Source of the DNA: Paraphysomonas bandaiensis
Taxonomy: Eukaryota; Protista; Chrysophyceae
NCBI GenBank assembly: GCA_965644295.1
Contig: CBFFRP010000132.1
Coordinates: forward strand, 62,001 to 126,000
Direction of reading: 5' to 3'
Length of the DNA stretch: 64,000 nt
This document shows, one piece after another, positions 1-61,697 of this stretch. Below the pieces are notes generated by a model. That model made no database searches and had not been told where the DNA came from. It saw nothing but the letters and a program-made list of their open reading frames with translations. Numbering within the stretch: the stretch's first letter is position 1; every line of letters starts with the position of its first letter. A program made the translations under genes and the position numbers.

Positions 1-1462
1 CGATTTCTCCATTGATGTGGGTCCCGGAAAACTAGATATTGAACTTGGAAATGTTGAAGGGCACAGCCATTCTGATATTGTGCAAGTAGGAAGACGATTC
101 CGGTCGTTTATTGAAGCGATGACTTTCTCGAATAAAGAGTTCTATGCACACAACATTGAGAGCGCATATGAGAGTATCCTCCGTGTTGAAGCAGTTATGA
201 GGGAAATTAACAACCCACGAGGACTCAGTGTGGTACTAAGCAACAAGGCTAACATATTACTGCGGTATTATGAGCTCCGTGATCATTTATCTCTTGCGAA
301 AAAATGCTTTGATATTGCGATACTGGAAGGTCATCGAGCAATTGAGACTTGTACAACGGAGGAAGATGAGAGGTACTGCACAATTACCCTGGCGGGACGC
401 TATGGAAATTTAGGTGCCTACTATATGGACACCAGGGAGTACGATAATAGTATCGCGGCTTATGAAATGGCCATAATGCTGCACGGGAAAGCCGCGGATA
501 AGATCGGAGAAATACGCGCACGTGGGAATCTCGGAAAGGCCTATTTGGACATGGGCCGCCTTAATGAGGCTGATGAAATCTTCAGAGAAGCGTTTGATTG
601 TGCTGTGCATAGTTTTGCCTCTCTCGGCACAGATCGTGCCCGAGAAGTTCTACAGTACGCTTCAATGAATATGGGAATACTGCTATGTTGTACTGAGGAG
701 TATGAGGAAGCCAGAAAATTTTTCACTTATTCCTTGGAACTGTCCAAGACTATACACAGACTAATTAAATTGAAGTGTTTGAAAGAGCTGAGTGAGGTGT
801 ACATGCATTTATCACATCCAGATGCCGAAGAAATGGGTAACTCAATTTCTCAAGATTTGACGCAATATGATGCTGTGCGCAAGCGCCACTTTCATTTTCT
901 TGTTGATGTTTCAAGTCGAATGACAAACGAAACGATGGCATTTTATCACGACAAGTTATTCTATATCATAACGAATTTGTGTACGATGAAGGATTACGTA
1001 TCCGCAACAGTTTATAATAACAACACCCGAAGAATAGTATCTAAAGAAGTTGTTGGAAGGCATAGATCGAATCTACTGCAAAGAATTACTCGCGAAACTT
1101 ATAACTTCCGTGGGACAGCCTCATTTTATGATGCGCTTGAACGATCGATTGTAAGTATTCGAAAGGATTCAATCGGAAGTGGAGATCAGTGGATCATAGC
1201 TTTATCAAATGCTAGAGACAACTCTTCGGTCAAAGATTTCGAAAATTTACCGTCCATTATTCAAAGGTGTAAAATTAATATTGTCATGATTACAGACAAG
1301 GTATTTTGGAATTTGGAGAGAGTTGACAGGTTGTTAAGTGCATGTCGATTTGGCCTACGAATATCGCAAGAAGGAGGTGAAATAAGTGATATTAAACGTG
1401 CTTTTGAAGCTGCTGATTCAAGTCTTGTCACCGTGAGTCATACGACCATGGAAACACTGTAA
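1..1462 (+). CDS. TPR-repeat + C-terminal vWA domain protein with an N-terminal HAMP-like segment; 5'-truncated by the window edge
   Basis: The frame is open from position 2 and the track start is a GTG. TPR-type helices (YGNLGAYY, ARGNLGKAYLDMGRLNEADEIF, MNMGILL). vWA-like motifs FLVDVSSRM, TASFYDAL and WIIALSNARDN. Confidence 0.75.
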   Translation, partial: DFSIDVGPGKLDIELGNVEGHSHSDIVQVGRRFRSFIEAMTFSNKEFYAHNIESAYESILRVEAVMREINNPRGLSVVLSNKANILLRYYELRDHLSLAKKCFDIAILEGHRAIETCTTEEDERYCTITLAGRYGNLGAYYMDTREYDNSIAAYEMAIMLHGKAADKIGEIRARGNLGKAYLDMGRLNEADEIFREAFDCAVHSFASLGTDRAREVLQYASMNMGILLCCTEEYEEARKFFTYSLELSKTIHRLIKLKCLKELSEVYMHLSHPDAEEMGNSISQDLTQYDAVRKRHFHFLVDVSSRMTNETMAFYHDKLFYIITNLCTMKDYVSATVYNNNTRRIVSKEVVGRHRSNLLQRITRETYNFRGTASFYDALERSIVSIRKDSIGSGDQWIIALSNARDNSSVKDFENLPSIIQRCKINIVMITDKVFWNLERVDRLLSACRFGLRISQEGGEISDIKRAFEAADSSLVTVSHTTMETL

Positions 1463-1844
1463 TTCACCCTTATATCTGTATATATATATATATATATATG
1501 GGTTTTTGTCAAAATTAGTGTTGTTTTATGAATACTTATCTTTGTGTAATGAACACGACCTAGCAGCCCACAATTAATTTATTTATCTTTTAATTTATTA
1601 CGAGTTACAATGAATTCTTATTTATACGTTAGCTAGCAATGTAACGCCTGTGCATCGTTCACTTGAAGAAAGTTGTTTCATTTGCTTGTGATAGAGCTTC
1701 AATGCGCAACAAGCCAGAGAACCTGCAGAATACAATAAAATACTCATTCGTTTAATTATGATGCGACTGATATATGGAAATATTATTCAACCAAGTCAAT
1801 TTGGTGGAAAAAACTAGTCAATTCAATAAATGACTCAACCTAGT

Positions 1845-2198
1845 CAAGCACCAATGCAACCACTTCTGCTCTATCACTCAAAGTAAACACAGTGAGCAAG
1901 CAGAATGTTGATATACCTGACTTCAAAATTTTGAGTCCTAAGGTGAGTCCTATGCTTGACTTCAGAAGGCAGCCCAATACCCCGGATACCTCTTTTAGGT
2001 CGGTCATTCCCGGATGCCTGTTTATTCGGTATAGTCCAAAGACGTCTATACAAAATTGACAATTATTATTGTCCCTTGTGCCACACAGAGAGAATATTAT
2101 TATCTGCTGACTATATATATATATGCGACCTTCGCTAGTTTCCCCGAGAAATATCCCCAGAACACCACGAAAAGGTGCGAGTCAGACTTCGTTGAGGA
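1845..2198 (-). mobile_element. SINE-like / non-autonomous retroposon family copy
   Basis: The reverse complement aligns by eye with the full copy at 52137-52615 (head CCTCAAC.AAGTC.G.CTCGCACCTTTTCGT.GTGTTCTGGGG; tail GAAGTGGTTGCA). Confidence 0.7.
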
Positions 2199-3082
2199 CA
2201 AACTCTGGTGCGCGCTCAAGCAAGACGTGTAGCCATGATTGAGTAATAGATAGATAAATGCAATAAGCTCTCTCATGTAATAATCAGATCTTTAATATGT
2301 AGCCATGATTGAATAGCTGAGCCATAAATTGGAAAAATACTGTAAATTATCCTAGATTTACCCAAAATATTGTAAAATTCCCACACGTTTGCATATTATA
2401 TTATAATATATATATTATATATAACTAAAGATTACAAATTCACCAGGTTTTCTATATAAAATTCACACTTTCCTTACATCATGAATTGTAGCAAGGAAGC
2501 GTTATAATATACCTGTATACTGTACTGTATCTAAACTAGACATCGACAAAACTAGGAGGTCTATTTACGCCTCTACACAGGGAGTGTGTTGAACTTTAAA
2601 ACATCATACTATATAATAGGGAGAACTCATGGAAGTATTGATAAAATGCCACAGAAACATATTTACCGTTGTGTAGTTGTAAATGTAGGAGTAAAATTTA
2701 GAGTCCATTAATATCTTATTATTATTATTAACACTTCATTTTTACCGATTGAAATGTGGATAAAAATTCCTCTGTATCCAGTAAGGTACGTGGTATTATT
2801 ATGAGCATGAATATACTATAACCACATTGGCATGATGGGGTAGGTGGAGTACAAAAGCGAACTTTTAAAGTTCAAGTTTTGGCCTGGCTGTAATTTATAA
2901 ATATAAGTACCATGCTGATATTATTATGTACTAATTATCTCTTGTAAGTATTTTTAATTATAGCCATCAGAACTTATCTATACATAGATAATAATGGTAT
3001 TGATAAATAATATGTACTATATAATGGATGGTATGTACCTAATATTAAATGTAGCCCACTAGGGTAAGCCTCATAATATCCC

Positions 3083-3469
3083 TGTAATCTTTCTGATGAG
3101 AAAGACCGTGTTTACAACGTTTTATATGAATTTAAAGTGCTTCCCAAACCGAGAATACACTGTCCAGAACACCAAACCGGTGAAACTGCCTCCTAACACA
3201 AGCAAACCGCGAGTATAGAATGAATTAAATTACGTTAAAACGTGTAAAGAAAAAGTGAAATCATACAACACTCTATCTTGCTGTGAATCATCTACAGTTT
3301 ACAGTATCATACTTGTACATATACGGGACTTATATCCCTTCAAGAATACAGTAACCGCAATGTATACTAAATAAACTGAAAATGAAAGTACAACAGCATG
3401 CTACCTAGAGTACCGCAGTATAACACCGTATAACTCCACGTATAACAGTAACTACAGGTATGCGTGACA
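3083..3469 (-). repeat. 3' LTR (387 bp)
   Basis: TGTAATC...GTGACA; identical to 7749-8135; adjacent to the PPT. Confidence 0.95.
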
Positions 3470-3724
3470 CTACCCCTTCTCCCTCCAGCTAGAGAAAAGA
3501 AATAGGAATACATATCTGGGATAGATAGAAGTAACACTTGTATCAGCCAATATAGCGTCATTCCAAGCATTAGCAAATAAATATCCAATTCATGAAATAA
3601 AAGTAATAAACATACGTAGAGCAATATTATATAATAATAAGTATGAATAATAGTATGAATGTTATAATATATATATGTGATATAATCATGAAATAAATAT
3701 TAAATAAATAAAAGTAATCAACAA

Positions 3725-55945: not shown

Positions 55946-56995
55946 CTATAATTCGCGGGAATTTTGCGCGTACAATTTCGTCCATGTATAACACCCCACT
56001 CCAAATACAGCGACTATAATGCCACATACGTTTAGAGTACTTAAGGAGACGTCGAAGTAAAATACTGTAAATACTATAATAACAACTCTACGGAACACAT
56101 TGAGAACAGCATGAGTTATAACAGATGATCGCCGGAGAGCCATAAAAGACAATATGTTGTAGCACGTATAGGCACATCCATTAACAACGCACTGAACCAA
56201 AATTGCTGAAAAAGAAAAACTTCCATTGCTGAACTCCATCATCGATTCTTTCTCAATTACTACAGCCAGAGGACAGGAGATCATAAATCCAATCACTGAA
56301 ATATTCGCAAAGAGTACTATTTCGTCAATAGTTCGACTACTGGCCTGGTATAACTGCTTCGCAACTACGGCACGATAAGAAAAGCAAATATTCGACAACG
56401 CCGCAAATACAAGTCCGAATAAGCTAAAAGAGTCTTCACCCATGCATGACATTCCAACTCCAACACATATCGGGACCAATGTCGCATATGATACAGCTGA
56501 TGCGACCTCATTGACGACAAAATATCCCAATATAACACTGGAGACTGGTTCTGCAGACTTCACTGTTTCCGCAAAATTCGCACTAACTAAACTGAAAGCT
56601 ATATTGGTGCAAAGAAAACCAAAAGTATAAGACACAGCAATTTGGCGCATAAAATTATTGAACTTTGAAGGAATGGGCTCAGATCTTAAAAGGCTAGATA
56701 TTGACTTCGTAATTAACGACGCGCAGAAAAATTGAGTAGAGCAAAGAAAAAATGGAAACGGAAATATTGTAAGAACATATTTTGATGTTGTTATAGCAAC
56801 CACAGCAGACGAATACCACCCAAACACTATCAGTATAAATACAGCGTTGCTATATAGACTAACTGTGCTGGGCCTCCCTTCACTGGAAGGCTTCCTTTCA
56901 AAGGTGGACTTCTCAATGTCATAAAGTACCCCACCCTTCAATATTGCATCTGGGGTATCTGGACGCACTTGATGCATCGGTTGAAAACGTAGCAT
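55946..56995 (-). CDS. Triose-phosphate transporter (TPT)/SLC35E-like nucleotide-sugar transporter
   Basis: About 9-10 hydrophobic helices. FPFPFFL, FAETVKSAEPVSSV, YNILSF and THAVLNVFRRVVII motifs. Confidence 0.9.
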   Translation of the reverse strand: MLRFQPMHQVRPDTPDAILKGGVLYDIEKSTFERKPSSEGRPSTVSLYSNAVFILIVFGWYSSAVVAITTSKYVLTIFPFPFFLCSTQFFCASLITKSISSLLRSEPIPSKFNNFMRQIAVSYTFGFLCTNIAFSLVSANFAETVKSAEPVSSVILGYFVVNEVASAVSYATLVPICVGVGMSCMGEDSFSLFGLVFAALSNICFSYRAVVAKQLYQASSRTIDEIVLFANISVIGFMISCPLAVVIEKESMMEFSNGSFSFSAILVQCVVNGCAYTCYNILSFMALRRSSVITHAVLNVFRRVVIIVFTVFYFDVSLSTLNVCGIIVAVFGVGCYTWTKLYAQNSREL

Positions 56996-57082
56996 ATATC
57001 TGCAACGTCTAGTTCAGACACGTCATATGCAATATCTCCAACCTTCACAACATGCGGATTGTGTGAAATGCAAGTACTAAGA

Positions 57083-57980
57083 ATGTATGTATGTATGTAT
57101 GTATGTATGTATGTATGTATGTATGTATGTATGTATGTATGTATGTATGTATGTATGTATGTATGTATGTATGTATGTATGTATGTATGTATGTATGTAT
57201 GTATGTATGTATGTATGTATGTATGTATGTATGTATGTATGTATGTATGTATGTATGTATGTATGTATGTATGTATGTATGTATGTATGTATGTATGTAT
57301 GTATGTATGTATGTATGTATGTATGTATGTATGTATGTATGTATGTATGTATGTATGTATGTATGTATGTATGTATGTATGTATGTATGTATGTATGTAT
57401 GTATGTATGTATGTATGTATGTATGTATGTATGTATGTATGTATGTATGTATGAATGTATGTATGTATGTATGTATGTATGTATGTATGTATGTATGTAT
57501 GTATGTATGTATGTATGTATGTATGTATGTATGTATGTATGTATGTATGTATGTATGTATGTATGTATGTATGTATGTATGTATGTATGTATGTATGTAT
57601 GTATGTATGTATGTATGTATGAATGTATGTATGTATGTATGTATGTATGTATGTATGTATGTATGTATGTATGTATGTATGTATGTATGTATGTATGTAT
57701 GTATGTATGTATGTATGTATGTATGTATGTATGTATGTATGTATGTATGTATGTATGTATGTATGTATGTATGTATGTATGTATGTATGTATGTATGTAT
57801 GTATGTATGTATGTATGAATGTATGTATGTATGTATGTATGTATGTATGTATGTATGTATGTATGTATGTATGTATGTATGTATGTATGTATGTATGTAT
57901 GTATGTATGTATGTATGTATGTATGTATGTATGTATGTATGTATGTATGTATGTATGTATGTATGTATGTATGTATGTAT
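57083..57980. repeat. (TATG)n array between divergent TPT and CHAT-NTPase-SH2 genes
   Basis: About 900 bp, with GAAT variants at 57453, 57621 and 57817. Lies ~88 bp and ~175 bp from the flanking ATGs. Confidence 0.98.
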
Positions 57981-58154
57981 ATTCTGCTATATATATGTAT
58001 ATATTATACGAATGGGGTGTTTAACTCGTGAAGATATTATCATCGTATATATTCTGTTGCTCGCTGATCGGTGTTGTGTAGCACGCTAGATCACTCTGTG
58101 AAGTTGGCGTGATCTATGTATCTCTGGTAGTGTATCTTTCATACAGCGTCTAGC

Positions 58155-61100
58155 ATGAGCGCAGAACCTTTCTACGTTGACTCCAGCCAGTACAGGCTGG
58201 CTTATTTATATGCCTCTCCTCTGATCGACACGACAGGCATGGAGCTGCCTCTGTTGGATACACAGCAGGAGATATCGATACTGAAGAATTGTATGAAGGA
58301 GGCCAATAGGTTGATACACTTCAAGGTAGATGTCGCCACCCCTCAGAATCTGAGGACCATTGCTACCCTGGGCGCAGTCATGATACAGTACTCCGGTCAT
58401 GGCATACCCGGAATACTAGCTTTTGAGAATGGCAGGGGGGAGGTTCACAGATTGGATGCTGATTCTCTGAAGACGTTGTTTTCGGCTGGAGGGGTGCAAA
58501 CCAAAATTGTATTCGTTAGCGCATGCCATTCGGAGGCTGCCGGGAGAAAGTTTGTAGAAGCCGGTGTTCCACATGTCATTGCTGTGAACAACCGGGTATC
58601 CGACAGCTCATCGCGTATATTCGCTCAAAACTTGTATTTTTCATTATTTCGTGGAAAGACTGTCCAGGAATCCTTTGAGATTGCGTCTAATATGGTAATG
58701 GTGACGGAAGGAGGTAAACCTACAGACCAGAAAAAATTTTTGCTTCTCCCCGAAGATGGTGCACATGATACTATTATTTTTGAGAATGCTTTGCATGGAC
58801 ATTATGTTGATGAAACCAATTCGCTGGCTCCAAATGGGTGTGACCCAACACCGAAATATTTCATCGGACGAAAGCGTCTGATGCAACAGGTTTTCTTTTG
58901 TCTAGGTGTGAGTAACAACAGATGTGTCACTATTAGGGGAGATAGAGGTATTGGTAAAACTGCTATTGCCTGTCGTTCTTGCGAGTATATGAATGAACGA
59001 AGGCTCTTCGATGTGATATACTTTGTGCCGCTTCGACGACGCGGGGCAAGTCCTGATGACGATGCCAATGCCCTTGCGACTGTGCTGGCTTCATGTATGG
59101 GGTCAGCTGGCGAAGGAGTGGGGTGTATCGAGGGCTTAATTCAAGCTCTTACTGGGGGACGGAGAGAGCTGAAAGATATACGGAATCCTGGATGTACCAA
59201 TCGAAACAATGGACTTGGGACAAGGAGGCATGGTGACAGCCGGAGAGAGGATAGATCAGACGATGGAAAGTGCAAACGGGTATTGTTTGTGATTGACGGG
59301 GCGGATGATTTCGTCTCGAGTTCAGTGACTCCAGCGCCGACTACATCTGCCGCCACAGCACCAGACGATATTGACAGGGCTCCCACTGAAGATGCCGCGT
59401 CCGTCACAATGACTTCTGACGAAGCTGGGAGTCGTAGATATGGTCTAATCACTCTCCTTGCGGAAGTGTTAAGGCGAACAGAAAATGTTAAGTTTTTAAT
59501 AACCTCCAGCAATCGCCTAGCCGGTGGTAATATGGTATGGCAGTTGAACGAGCCTGAGAAGGTTATTTCGGTAGCAGGGCTATCTAACAGGCACTCGGCA
59601 GAGCTCCTTGTGAAGCTTGCACCACGGGGATTGTTGCCGTCTGAAATGAACTCTGATAACCCTGCAGTAGCACTTGATACCCTTGCAGCCCGTCCAGTTG
59701 TACAAGCGCTTGGAGGCCATCCGAGGGCGCTCGCAATGTTTGCTTCGTTTCTCTCTGACCGTGTGCTGGACGACTCGCCCGAAATGAATGACATGGCAAA
59801 AGAGGTGCTGAAGAAAGCACAGGAGTGGAGAGAAGAATTTGACCCAGATTCTGCTCAATTACTGTTGCCTAGTAATTCTACGCATAAGGACGATTGCGGT
59901 AGGTTTGAAAGCGTCCCAGCCATTCCAGTTGCTGTTCCAGTGTCGGCAACAGCAGTAATGCGAAGAGATCATCCGGGTTACCCTACAGTCTCTGCGACTA
60001 CAGCGAGTACAGTATCCACTACTCCGACGAAAGCAGCACGGGCAATAACAGATTGTGGAGTGCGACACCGCGATACAAGTGACATTCAGACTGCGAACTC
60101 ACGATCTCGGAAGCCAACACGCGCTGCGTCTTCCGCCTCCCCGAGTCTCCATCATCCGCGTGTTGCCTCGCACTCTCCTCTCATCGCCCCATCGCTCTTG
60201 CACTCCTCTGTAAGTTCCAGTGCATTAAACATAGACTCGAGTGCTGGCAGGGTGTCCGGTAGAAATGGGAATGCAGTTGGAAACTTAGAACACAGTCATA
60301 GTCAGCCCAACTTACGTACAGCTTCTCCATGGGAGCGAGAGAGCGCTCAGTTCTCCCAGACTGTGTTTGCCAGTAACTCTCGTAGTAGCCGTTCCGATGT
60401 TTATCTTGAGGAAGCTCGCTCTGTAGCCCGTGAAGTTATTTCTGATCCCGTCTGTGCGGAGGTTTGGGCCCGCGTGTCTGCTGTTAATAACGGATGTTCC
60501 CCACCCCTCACCTCTGTTCGGTGGACGAGCCTTATATCAGCACTCTCAGAGTCCCTTGAAGCAGAGACTAGAGTTACTATTAATGGTGGAGCTCCACAAA
60601 GTGGAGATGAGGATAATCTCGTCTCTGTCACTCTATCACGACGTTTGACTCGTGAGGAAGCAAAGTTTCTAGGGGTGCGGATGCAACTGAGTGGCGCACG
60701 TGTTGTGTCTGGGAAGGGTAGACAGCACGGTCGCCAGGCAGCAGTGGACTACATGATCGACAGGGAGCGCTTTATTGTTTTCTGTGAAGAATGGTGGAGT
60801 GCACTTTTGAATTCACTACGAATCCTCAATGCAGAATTCAGTTGTAAGGACCCCATAATTATCCACGGATTCTTATCTAGGCAGCGCTCGGAGGAAAGGC
60901 TGTTAGAAACGAATGAACGTGGCGTTTTCCTTTTCCGGTTTAGTGAGTCTAGGAAAGGATACTTGGTGGTATCTTTTACGGATTATGCTACTGATTCGAC
61001 TGGACAATCCTCGAGGTGAGTAATTCTGCTTGGTGGTATAATATTGGTTCTCATTCGTAGAGAGTTTTCTGTTGTTGACGTCTTGTATCTGACCTTCCTT

Positions 61101-61331
61101 TATTGGTATAATAGGGTACGAGATGGCTCGGACGGGCGCGCTGTGGCTTTAAGAGCTCACCATTGCCTGGTTAATGTCGAGCCAAGTGGACTCTCCATGT
61201 ATTTTGAGGACGGAGAATGCAAATACGACTCCCTTGAAGAACTCGTTATGAAGTGTACTGGGTTGCGTACATTGTACCCGGATATACCAAAAGATGAAGC
61301 ATTTAACGCAATTAGCCGGTTTAGAACGTAG
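58155..61331 (+). CDS. CHAT (caspase-like) protease + STAND/NB-ARC NTPase + STAT-type linker-SH2 protein; 2 exons
   Basis: CHAT dyad motifs IQYSGHG and FVSACHS. Walker A GDRGIGKT, Walker B LFVIDGAD, FLITS and GGHPRAL. SH2 IHGFLSRQRSEERL...GVFLFRFSES...LYPDIPKDEAF. A 99-nt GT-AG intron at 61016-61114 joins the two ORFs in frame. Confidence 0.88.
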
Positions 61332-61697
61332 TGACACATGTATTTTTCGTCATTCGTGTACATCGTGCTGATTGCAAGTTGTTATGAGCAACGCATGTTT
61401 GTCAGCCTTTACCATCTCATTTTATATTTCACTGCTACACTTGTGGATAATTAACTGCTTGTCTTTTAACGATTTTCGATAGTTAGAGTTAATGGATGAA
61501 TATCTCGGAAGTTCTGTATTTCTTTAGACAGACTGTACTTAGCAGTACAAACTTTGGAAGACCTTGTACTGATACATCTTTTATTTTTTCTCACTAAGAT
61601 ATGACTTGTGAAACACATTCTGACCTAGGATACTTCGGAAATGTGTTGAGGTATATGATATATATACGATCTTTTTGTCGTACAAGAGTCAGTATTT

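Follow-up and report, generated by a model that had tools for sequence, protein, structure and literature searches.

A spliced gene of Paraphysomonas bandaiensis joins a CHAT protease, a STAND NTPase and a STAT-type linker-SH2 module in one chain

Animals, plants, fungi and bacteria all build regulated cell death and innate immunity around STAND/NLR-type switches and caspase-fold proteases. The reading of phosphotyrosine (pTyr) by SH2 domains is commonly regarded as having arisen in animals and amoebozoans. A gene at positions 58155-61331 of the window analyzed here (a stretch of 64,000 nucleotides (nt) from Paraphysomonas bandaiensis, contig CBFFRP010000132.1, assembly GCA_965644295.1) encodes a CHAT protease, a STAND NTPase and a STAT-type linker-SH2 module on a single chain. 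Paraphysomonas is a heterotrophic chrysophyte. An earlier note, made from the letters of this DNA, had read the protein as a pTyr-gated oligomerizing protease switch. Is the fusion real, is it confined to this organism, and what could such a protein do?

The gene and its transcript

On the plus strand, an open reading frame (ORF) runs from position 58155 to a TGA codon at 61017-61019 (954 amino acids, aa), and a second open frame ends at 61331. By sequence, the intervening intron begins with a GTGAGT donor at 61016 and its TAG acceptor finishes at 61114. Splicing of both exons yields 3075 coding bases (1025 codons), and the C-terminal half of the SH2 domain, with the motif LYPDIPKDEAF, is encoded by exon 2.

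The public transcript protein P0001 (MMETSP1103, taxon 36769, Paraphysomonas; 1025 aa, labelled ‘type:complete’) was used as the reference for the spliced protein and was checked against each exon separately. It is 100% identical to exons 1 and 2; in the BLASTP comparison of window positions 61116-61328 with P0001 residues 940-1025, all 71 aligned positions agree (71/71). Public sequencing runs were also compared with window positions 57900-61600 for splice joints. A GT..AG joint skipping 99 nt is present in contigs of three RNA-type runs (X1, X4 and X5), one of the runs being a poly(A) marine metatranscriptome, and was not found in the DNA run X17, where the intron is retained. A transcript contig of run X1 (3370 nt) covers 58027-61013 and 61113-61472 and has a loose end of 23 A residues at 61472. 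The identity of P0001 and the joint in the RNA-type runs together establish that the gene model and the intron are correct and that transcripts include the SH2 domain. The intron is the one proposed in the earlier note, which had also considered transcripts stopping short of the SH2 domain; the polyadenylated X1 contig, spanning 58027-61472, contains it. Coordinates of the gene and of the encoded domains are collected in Table 1.

Table 1. Features of the CHAT-STAND-SH2 gene (window positions; AF2, AlphaFold2; UTR, untranslated region)
Feature	Coordinates	Strand	Evidence
mRNA, minimum extent (5′ UTR, two exons, one intron, 3′ UTR)	58027..61472	+	Poly(A) added past 61472; X1 transcript contig
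Exon 1, coding part (residues 1-953 and two bases of codon 954)	58155..61015	+	ORF list; P0001 100% identical
CHAT protease domain (residues 7-214)	58173..58796	+	Pfam, AF2 model, VIA
STAND NTPase module: nucleotide-binding domain, helical domain, winged helix (residues 222-565)	58818..59849	+	Pfam, VIA
Low-complexity Ser/Ala/Thr/Pro-rich spacer (residues 566-739)	59850..60371	+	Composition; poor alignment
Helical STAT-type linker, EF-hand-like (residues ~740-898)	60372..60848	+	AF2, VIA, family profile
SH2 domain, intron-interrupted (residues ~899-1016)	60849..61301	+	Pfam, VIA
Intron, 99 nt, GT..AG, splits SH2	61016..61114	+	Sequence and RNA-run joint
Exon 2, coding part (residues 954-1025 and TAG stop)	61115..61331	+	BLASTP to P0001

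Domains of the encoded protein

Profile and structural comparisons fully support the assignment of the N-terminal region as a CHAT protease of the clan CD caspase-haemoglobinase fold with an intact His/Cys dyad, for which peptidase activity is predicted. The Pfam match (PF12770, residues 32-178) scores 33.2 bits against a cut-off of 24. The predicted catalytic residues are His82 (nt 58398-58400), within YSGHG (SGHG at residues 80-83, from nt 58392), and Cys124 (nt 58524-58526), within SACHSE (SACHS at 122-126, from nt 58518), the two motifs named in the earlier note. Modelled with AlphaFold2 from an alignment of 30 sequences, residues 1-565 reached a predicted local distance difference test score (pLDDT) of 85.3 and a predicted template modelling score (pTM) of 0.84. 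In the VIA comparison the CHAT part of this model matched the activated form of SAVED-CHAT (8tl0) best, with Z 22.2 and a root-mean-square deviation (rmsd) of 2.8 over 196 aa; it also matched gingipain RgpB (Z 14.4) and the CHAT domain of DdvA (13.6). SAVED-CHAT, which is associated with type III CRISPR, and the Craspase TPR-CHAT protein Csx29 are likewise CHAT proteases, but both are prokaryotic and have neither STAND nor SH2 domains; the former is activated by cyclic oligoadenylate bound to SAVED and the latter by target RNA on gRAMP. In SAVED-CHAT filaments the protease is switched on by ligand-driven assembly.

The following region is equally well supported as an Apaf-1/CED-4-like STAND NTPase, and nucleotide-dependent oligomerization is predicted. 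The full motif set noticed earlier is in place: Walker A GDRGIGKT (262-269; GIGKT at 265-269) with Lys268 at nt 58956-58958, Walker B LFVIDGADD (377-385), LITS (448-451) and GxP GGHPRAL (520-526). Pfam reports a NACHT match at residues 256-316 (34.2 bits, cut-off 26.7) and weaker AAA_16, NB-ARC and nSTAND matches, while the best VIA scores for residues 222-565 were obtained with CED-4 (Z 16.6), NRC4 (16.3), Apaf-1 (16.1) and ZAR1 (15.9). The subclass is left undecided between NACHT, indicated by sequence, and NB-ARC, since the top fold matches are AP-ATPases. This nucleotide-binding oligomerization domain (NOD) fold (Z 15-16.6) is shared with the Apaf-1 and CED-4 apoptosomes (acting with caspase-9 and CED-3), NLR inflammasomes and plant resistosomes. 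Their logic, in which a sensor acts through nucleotide-driven oligomerization and proximity activates a caspase-fold protease, may also be shared. In those systems, however, a separate protease is recruited through CARD or another death-fold domain and the sensors are WD40 or LRR repeats, whereas here the protease lies on the same chain and an SH2 domain occupies the sensor position. Because it lacks LRRs, the protein falls outside the NLRs sensu stricto and would be NLR-like in logic only.

The spacer that follows is 174 aa long, somewhat shorter than the ~200 aa of the earlier description, whose Ser/Pro/Thr-rich composition stands (Ser, Pro, Thr and Ala make up 47% of it, versus 30% of the whole protein). 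It is poorly aligned and gap-rich among relatives (alignment A1), varying in both length and sequence; Pfam gave no match within it. It is probably disordered.

For residues 740-1025, the assignment as a STAT-type linker-SH2 module with a retained phosphate-binding Arg is fully supported, and pTyr binding is predicted. All motifs of the C-terminal series reported in the earlier note were found: VRWTSLISALSESL (788-801), RRLTREEAKFL (829-839), FCEEWW (876-881), IHGFLSR (903-909), FLFRFSES (925-932) and LYPDIPKDEAF (1007-1017). The SH2 match in Pfam (PF00017, residues 903-999) scores 36.6 bits against a cut-off of 21. Residues Arg909 (αA), Arg928 (βB5; CGG at nt 60936-60938) and Ser930 (βB7) align to the phosphate-pocket residues of RasGAP, SH2B and STAT.

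An AlphaFold2 model of this region alone (pLDDT 73.9, pTM 0.73) gave STAT6, STAT5a, Dictyostelium STATa and STAT2 as the best Foldseek matches, over ~284 columns and with E-values from 1.7e-6. STATs also ranked first in VIA (Z 12-12.7 over 185-207 aa; model positions 16-282 aligned to residues 452-690 of Dictyostelium STATa at Z 12.7), while the lone SH2 domains of SAP, EAT2, SHP2 and RasGAP reached Z ~9 with rmsd 2.2-2.6 over ~88 aa (model positions 160-268). A shape search of the ESM Atlas returned STAT5/6 clusters (template modelling score, TM, 0.58-0.60) and an Arabidopsis SHB cluster (0.48 over 171 aa); its feature search returned a largely plant SH2 cluster (score 0.91), which is a lead only. 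The profile and structure searches suggested at the outset (CHAT, NACHT and SH2 profiles; AlphaFold2 with Foldseek) thus recovered both the CHAT and the SH2/STAT folds, and the parallel drawn earlier with the STAT linker and SH2 domain is borne out, STATs leading in Foldseek, VIA and ESM Atlas.

A profile of the C-terminal region of the family matched STATs at E-values of 3e-10 to 1e-8 (STAT1 3e-10, STAT6 6e-10). The STAT6 match spans positions 93-266, i.e. part of the linker plus SH2, and the family motif LYPxIxKxDAF was aligned with LYPNIDKDHAF of STAT1. The SH2 domain of SHP2 was nearly equal to the STATs in E-value, so the STAT-type assignment rests on the linker and the tail and not on the SH2 core. 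With the 51-aa tail alone, STAT6 and STAT3 were the main matches in PDB, at a non-significant E of ~1. The Pfam STAT_linker model had no match in P0001 at E up to 0.1; it matches 4/19 family members (described below), the best at 1.4e-5 and 25.9 bits, just below the cut-off of 27. The linker assignment is therefore based chiefly on the structural matches and on the alignment of the family profile with STAT5/6.

The protein shares with metazoan STAT1-6 and Dictyostelium STATa the linker-SH2 module, the FLxRFSES pocket motif and the STAT-specific LYPxIxKxxAF tail. It is nevertheless not a STAT transcription factor, since it is devoid of the N-domain, coiled coil, DNA-binding domain and tail tyrosine; unlike STATs, it also has no transactivation domain. 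The CHAT and NOD parts stand where STATs carry their N-domain, coiled coil and DNA-binding domain. STAT_int, STAT_alpha and STAT_bind gave no Pfam match in any of the 19 members, in agreement with the DNA-binding domain having been called absent, and neither the protein nor the family members matched the LRR, TPR, WD40 or ANK models of Pfam at E up to 1. An SH2 domain packed against an EF-hand-like helical domain is also found, outside animals and amoebozoans, in Arabidopsis SHA/SHB, and in the TKB region of Cbl; SHB has a DG1062_N domain and Cbl a four-helix bundle and RING, but neither is joined to a protease or an NTPase. In plants, STAT-type linker-SH2 modules are known as stand-alone modules (PMC3670131).

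A stramenopile family and its context in the Paraphysomonas genome

The C-terminal module, used as a profile in an exhaustive search, retrieved 1144 proteins at E≤1e-3 and 207 at E≤1e-10. Twenty long matches were scanned, and 15 of them carry CHAT and/or STAND NTPase together with the SH2/STAT-linker module, some as truncated models; the remainder include genuine metazoan STATs (~1e-16). Close relatives with the same three domains (P0002-P0008, P0013 and P0015) are 39-53% identical to the Paraphysomonas protein. Two are complete in one frame: P0007 is an uninterrupted ORF of 944 aa with all three domains on a 145-kb contig, and P0015 a complete three-domain ORF on a 3.2-kb contig. Named members come from Triparma verrucosa, T. 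strigata and T. retinervis (Bolidophyceae), the brown alga Ectocarpus sp. and the oomycete Saprolegnia diclina, where they are annotated only as hypothetical or as ‘SH2 domain-containing protein’. The source of every named member is a stramenopile, and a profile search based on the wide alignment A3 gave nearly the same candidates again and no further named taxa. The architecture, found in at least 20 diverged relatives, is therefore that of a stramenopile-wide family spanning oomycetes, chrysophytes and brown algae, whose members public databases already list without a name. The earlier suspicion that it was uncharacterized holds to the extent that no paper describing a CHAT-STAND-SH2 architecture was found in the searchable open literature (subscription-only surveys lie outside it), but the architecture is not unique to Paraphysomonas.

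Conservation was examined in an alignment of 19 members with 26-53% identity to the query. Pfam recognizes CHAT and SH2 in 19/19 of them and NACHT in 18/19. The Walker A Lys, the Walker B Asp, the Gly and Pro of GxP, and the βB5 Arg and βB7 Ser of SH2 are invariant (19/19), the αA Arg/Lys of SH2 is kept in all but one member, and both CHAT His and Cys are kept in 18/19, P0244 lacking the two. Such conservation of the dyad, the P-loop and the phosphate pocket is the pattern expected from purifying selection. The lineage of P0244 and P0101, found on ENA metagenome contigs of up to 1.4 Mb, has lost the His (GIG) and the Cys (SARHS) and retains the P-loop and the SH2 Arg; these are probable pseudo-protease members.

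The closest relatives outside the family are of the CHAT-STAND-TPR and LRR-CHAT-STAND types, known from prokaryotic conflict systems and haptophytes and represented here by locus C296 (see below), in which CHAT is likewise fused directly to a STAND NTPase. The CHAT-STAND-TPR-type relatives share 41-46% identity over the CHAT-P-loop region, and both types have the same His/Cys dyad, Walker motifs and GxP. The sensors of both types are repeats, TPR after the NTPase or LRR ahead of CHAT, in keeping with what the earlier note stated of STAND proteins, whereas the SH2 family has the spacer and the STAT-type linker-SH2 and forms a separate clade. In an unrooted maximum likelihood tree built by a quick search from 83 rows of the CHAT+P-loop region, a branch with 98% support in the Shimodaira-Hasegawa-like approximate likelihood ratio test (SH-aLRT) separates the SH2-bearing rows (17/17), together with six rows that are short or unassigned, from the TPR- and LRR-bearing relatives. 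This is consistent with a single origin of the SH2-bearing family but does not prove it, because the tree is unrooted and several rows have long branches. One CHAT-STAND-TPR cluster (P0018, including P0093, labelled as a Methanothrix sp. metagenome-assembled genome) has 42-43% identity over the CHAT-P-loop region, more than some stramenopile family members; as these proteins carry an archaeal label, this hints either that the CHAT-STAND part has moved between domains of life or that bins are mislabelled.

Within the 62.5-Mb Paraphysomonas genome (G000), the Pfam SH2 model identified three loci: the gene described here, C281 and C363. Using the protein as query added two more, C55 and C296. The former (C55, ~1250-3700; L013) is a second, multi-intron CHAT-STAND-linker-SH2 paralog. 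The latter (C296:21041-25480; L006:1042-5481; 1479 aa) holds the only other CHAT match of Pfam in the genome, and its order is a weak, sub-threshold N-terminal LRR hint, a CHAT-like region at ~1085-1222, just below the Pfam cut-off and 38% identical to the CHAT region of the 58155-61331 gene, and a sub-threshold STAND/AAA_16 match at 1313-1397. Locus C281 (C281:383889-384455; L001:1438-2004, minus strand) is a small ORF with a Cbl_N2-like EF-hand and an SH2 domain (48.5 bits; WFHGSLSR...FLVRLSES). It has the look of a stand-alone reader, reminiscent of Cbl TKB and the STAT linker-SH2. Locus C363 (L004:5752-9180) encodes a 1142-aa protein whose sole Pfam match is SH2 (residues 256-312); upstream of it lies a 1757-aa ORF with at least seven PSALDMFDMAPPPKPKPKPA repeats in its tail.

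More than 150 matches to PK_Tyr_Ser-Thr were found in the genome, and three of the best eight have a catalytic loop of the tyrosine-kinase type: an Ank-SAM-kinase protein (C146; L022:1036-3783) with HRDLAARN and PIRWSAPE, a kinase-PH protein (C579; L023:2924-5761) with HRDLACRN and PVRWEAPE, and a 538-aa kinase (C362; L024:700-2316) with HRDLACRN and no subdomain VIII proline motif. Such catalytic-loop and P(I/V)RWxAPE signatures have been used to call oomycete tyrosine kinases (PMC3019232). On their motifs, these three cytoplasmic kinases are candidate writers of pTyr. Together with the three SH2 loci, they give the genome candidate writers of pTyr and very few readers, and the CHAT-STAND-SH2 protein is one of perhaps three readers with an intact pTyr pocket.

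Directly upstream of the CHAT-STAND-SH2 gene there is a ~1-kb tetranucleotide microsatellite of the ATGT/TGTA type (57059-58089), which produces artefactual ‘MYVC’ ORFs in several frames; the start of the X1 transcript contig (58027) falls in the last tens of bases of this array. The next gene upstream (55946-56995, minus strand) encodes a 349-aa multi-pass membrane protein resembling sugar-phosphate/nucleotide-sugar transporters.

Possible mode of action

In STAND proteins the sensor domain controls nucleotide exchange and oligomerization, and caspase-fold proteases, SAVED-CHAT included, are activated by assembly. For these reasons, a path leading from pTyr through a NOD oligomer to active CHAT is the most economical reading. 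CHAT would serve as the effector and the STAND module as the oligomerization switch, joined through a flexible spacer to a linker-SH2 in the place that TPR occupies in related proteins. The linker-SH2 would bind a pTyr-bearing partner supplied in trans and phosphorylated by one of the few kinases of the organism with tyrosine-kinase signatures. Binding of this partner would recruit the protein or relieve its inhibition, the STAND module would then exchange nucleotide and oligomerize, and the clustered CHAT domains, active by induced proximity, would cut downstream substrates. We infer the pTyr binding, the oligomerization, the proteolysis and the order of these events. The pTyr-gated oligomerizing protease of the earlier note is plausible and soundly reasoned, as it fits the strict conservation of residues in the catalytic dyad, the P-loop and the pTyr pocket. 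On balance, we lean towards the view that the protein, a member of a stramenopile-wide family, is a signalling protease of NLR/apoptosome-like design on a single chain, triggered by pTyr.

Several points weigh against this view. No cis or reciprocal docking tyrosine outside the domain cores is conserved in the wide family (19 members), and a tail tyrosine like that of STATs is missing, since the protein ends eight residues past LYPDIPKDEAF; a ligand provided in trans is therefore probable. Tyr7 and Tyr217, which lie in two Y[VI]D motifs, were considered as docking sites in cis and rejected, being conserved in the close subfamily only. Ancient SH2 domains such as that of Spt6 bind phosphoserine or phosphothreonine (pSer/pThr) and not pTyr. 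In the C55 paralog the FLxRFSES motif has become FLIGVSQS (GTFLIGVSQS) with Gly in place of the βB5 Arg, so the module is able to persist without canonical pTyr binding. Matches to classical protein tyrosine phosphatases (PTPs) are weak in the genome, the best scoring 26 bits. A complex prediction of residues 1-565 with 740-1025, aimed at autoinhibition in cis, scored 0.01, which weighs neither for nor against the view.

The strongest competing explanation keeps the architecture but lets the SH2 domain read something other than pTyr. The domain would bind pSer/pThr or non-phosphorylated peptides, or serve in dimerization, as in Spt6 or possibly plant SHA/SHB. It would hold the STAND protease in place or keep it autoinhibited, with activation by another cue. 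The barely detectable PTPs and the C55 paralog, which keeps the fold with Gly for the βB5 Arg, speak for it. We know of no demonstrated pTyr ligand for Arabidopsis SHB, the structurally related cluster named above (TM 0.48), and stramenopiles are commonly held to be poor in pTyr signalling. In Phytophthora infestans, only four plausible SH2 proteins have been reported (PMC3019232). However, the invariance of the βB5 Arg and βB7 Ser, the near-complete retention of the αA Arg/Lys and the presence of kinases with tyrosine-kinase catalytic-loop signatures in the same genome all argue the other way, and we regard this explanation as rather unlikely.

A role as an innate-immune, NLR-type pathogen sensor, in which the SH2 domain would detect tyrosine-phosphorylated pathogen effectors, or phosphorylation that a pathogen induces on a guarded host protein, and set off cell death through the protease, appears less probable still. 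As a phagotroph, Paraphysomonas constantly meets bacteria and viruses. The CHAT-STAND part is closest to TPR and LRR types of the prokaryotic conflict-system kind, the best fold match of the protease (8tl0) is a CRISPR-associated defence protease, and the NOD resembles those of apoptosomes and resistosomes. Yet each genome has no more than one or two copies, full-length identity between orthologs is 47-53%, and the sensor module is well conserved, a pattern unlike the expanded and fast-diversifying sensor repertoires typical of immune NLRs. The label ‘immune or cell-death’ given to the protein in the earlier note gains no direct support, as its one or two conserved copies per genome do not form an expanded receptor family. 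The low copy number and good conservation suggest that a conserved endogenous switch of cell state or cell fate is more likely than a diversifying pathogen receptor.

Finally, the idea that the fusion is a biologically meaningless artefact (a gene-model or assembly chimera of neighbours, or a decaying pseudogene), which the intron splitting SH2 and the truncated database relatives (P0002 and P0003, running into the intron, and P0009-P0012, without CHAT) might have encouraged, is already refuted by the single poly(A) transcript contig that covers the whole ORF, the identical transcript protein, the orthologs holding all three domains in one uninterrupted ORF and the conservation of catalytic residues across 19 diverged members.

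The favoured reading, of a pTyr-triggered signalling protease, can be extended further, though only tentatively. The protein may be a stramenopile ‘single-chain apoptosome’, in which a minimal pTyr network, made up of a handful of kinases with tyrosine-kinase signatures and three or four SH2 proteins, feeds a STAND-driven protease that decides cell fate. This route from pTyr to a protease would then have evolved independently of the animal JAK-STAT pathway and apoptosome, and the STAT-type linker-SH2 would have been portable before or outside STATs.

One chain here joins a caspase-fold protease and STAND switch with an SH2 reader, in a lineage thought to be nearly free of pTyr signalling. If the pTyr-triggered reading is true, the family would provide a concrete, testable output of pTyr signalling in stramenopiles, a group that includes crop and fish pathogens, marine grazers and algae. 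It would also add a new class of sensor to the STAND proteins and support the STAT linker-SH2 as an ancient portable module, and the CHAT-STAND-SH2 protein would offer a compact, genetically simple model for the activation of proteases by induced proximity.

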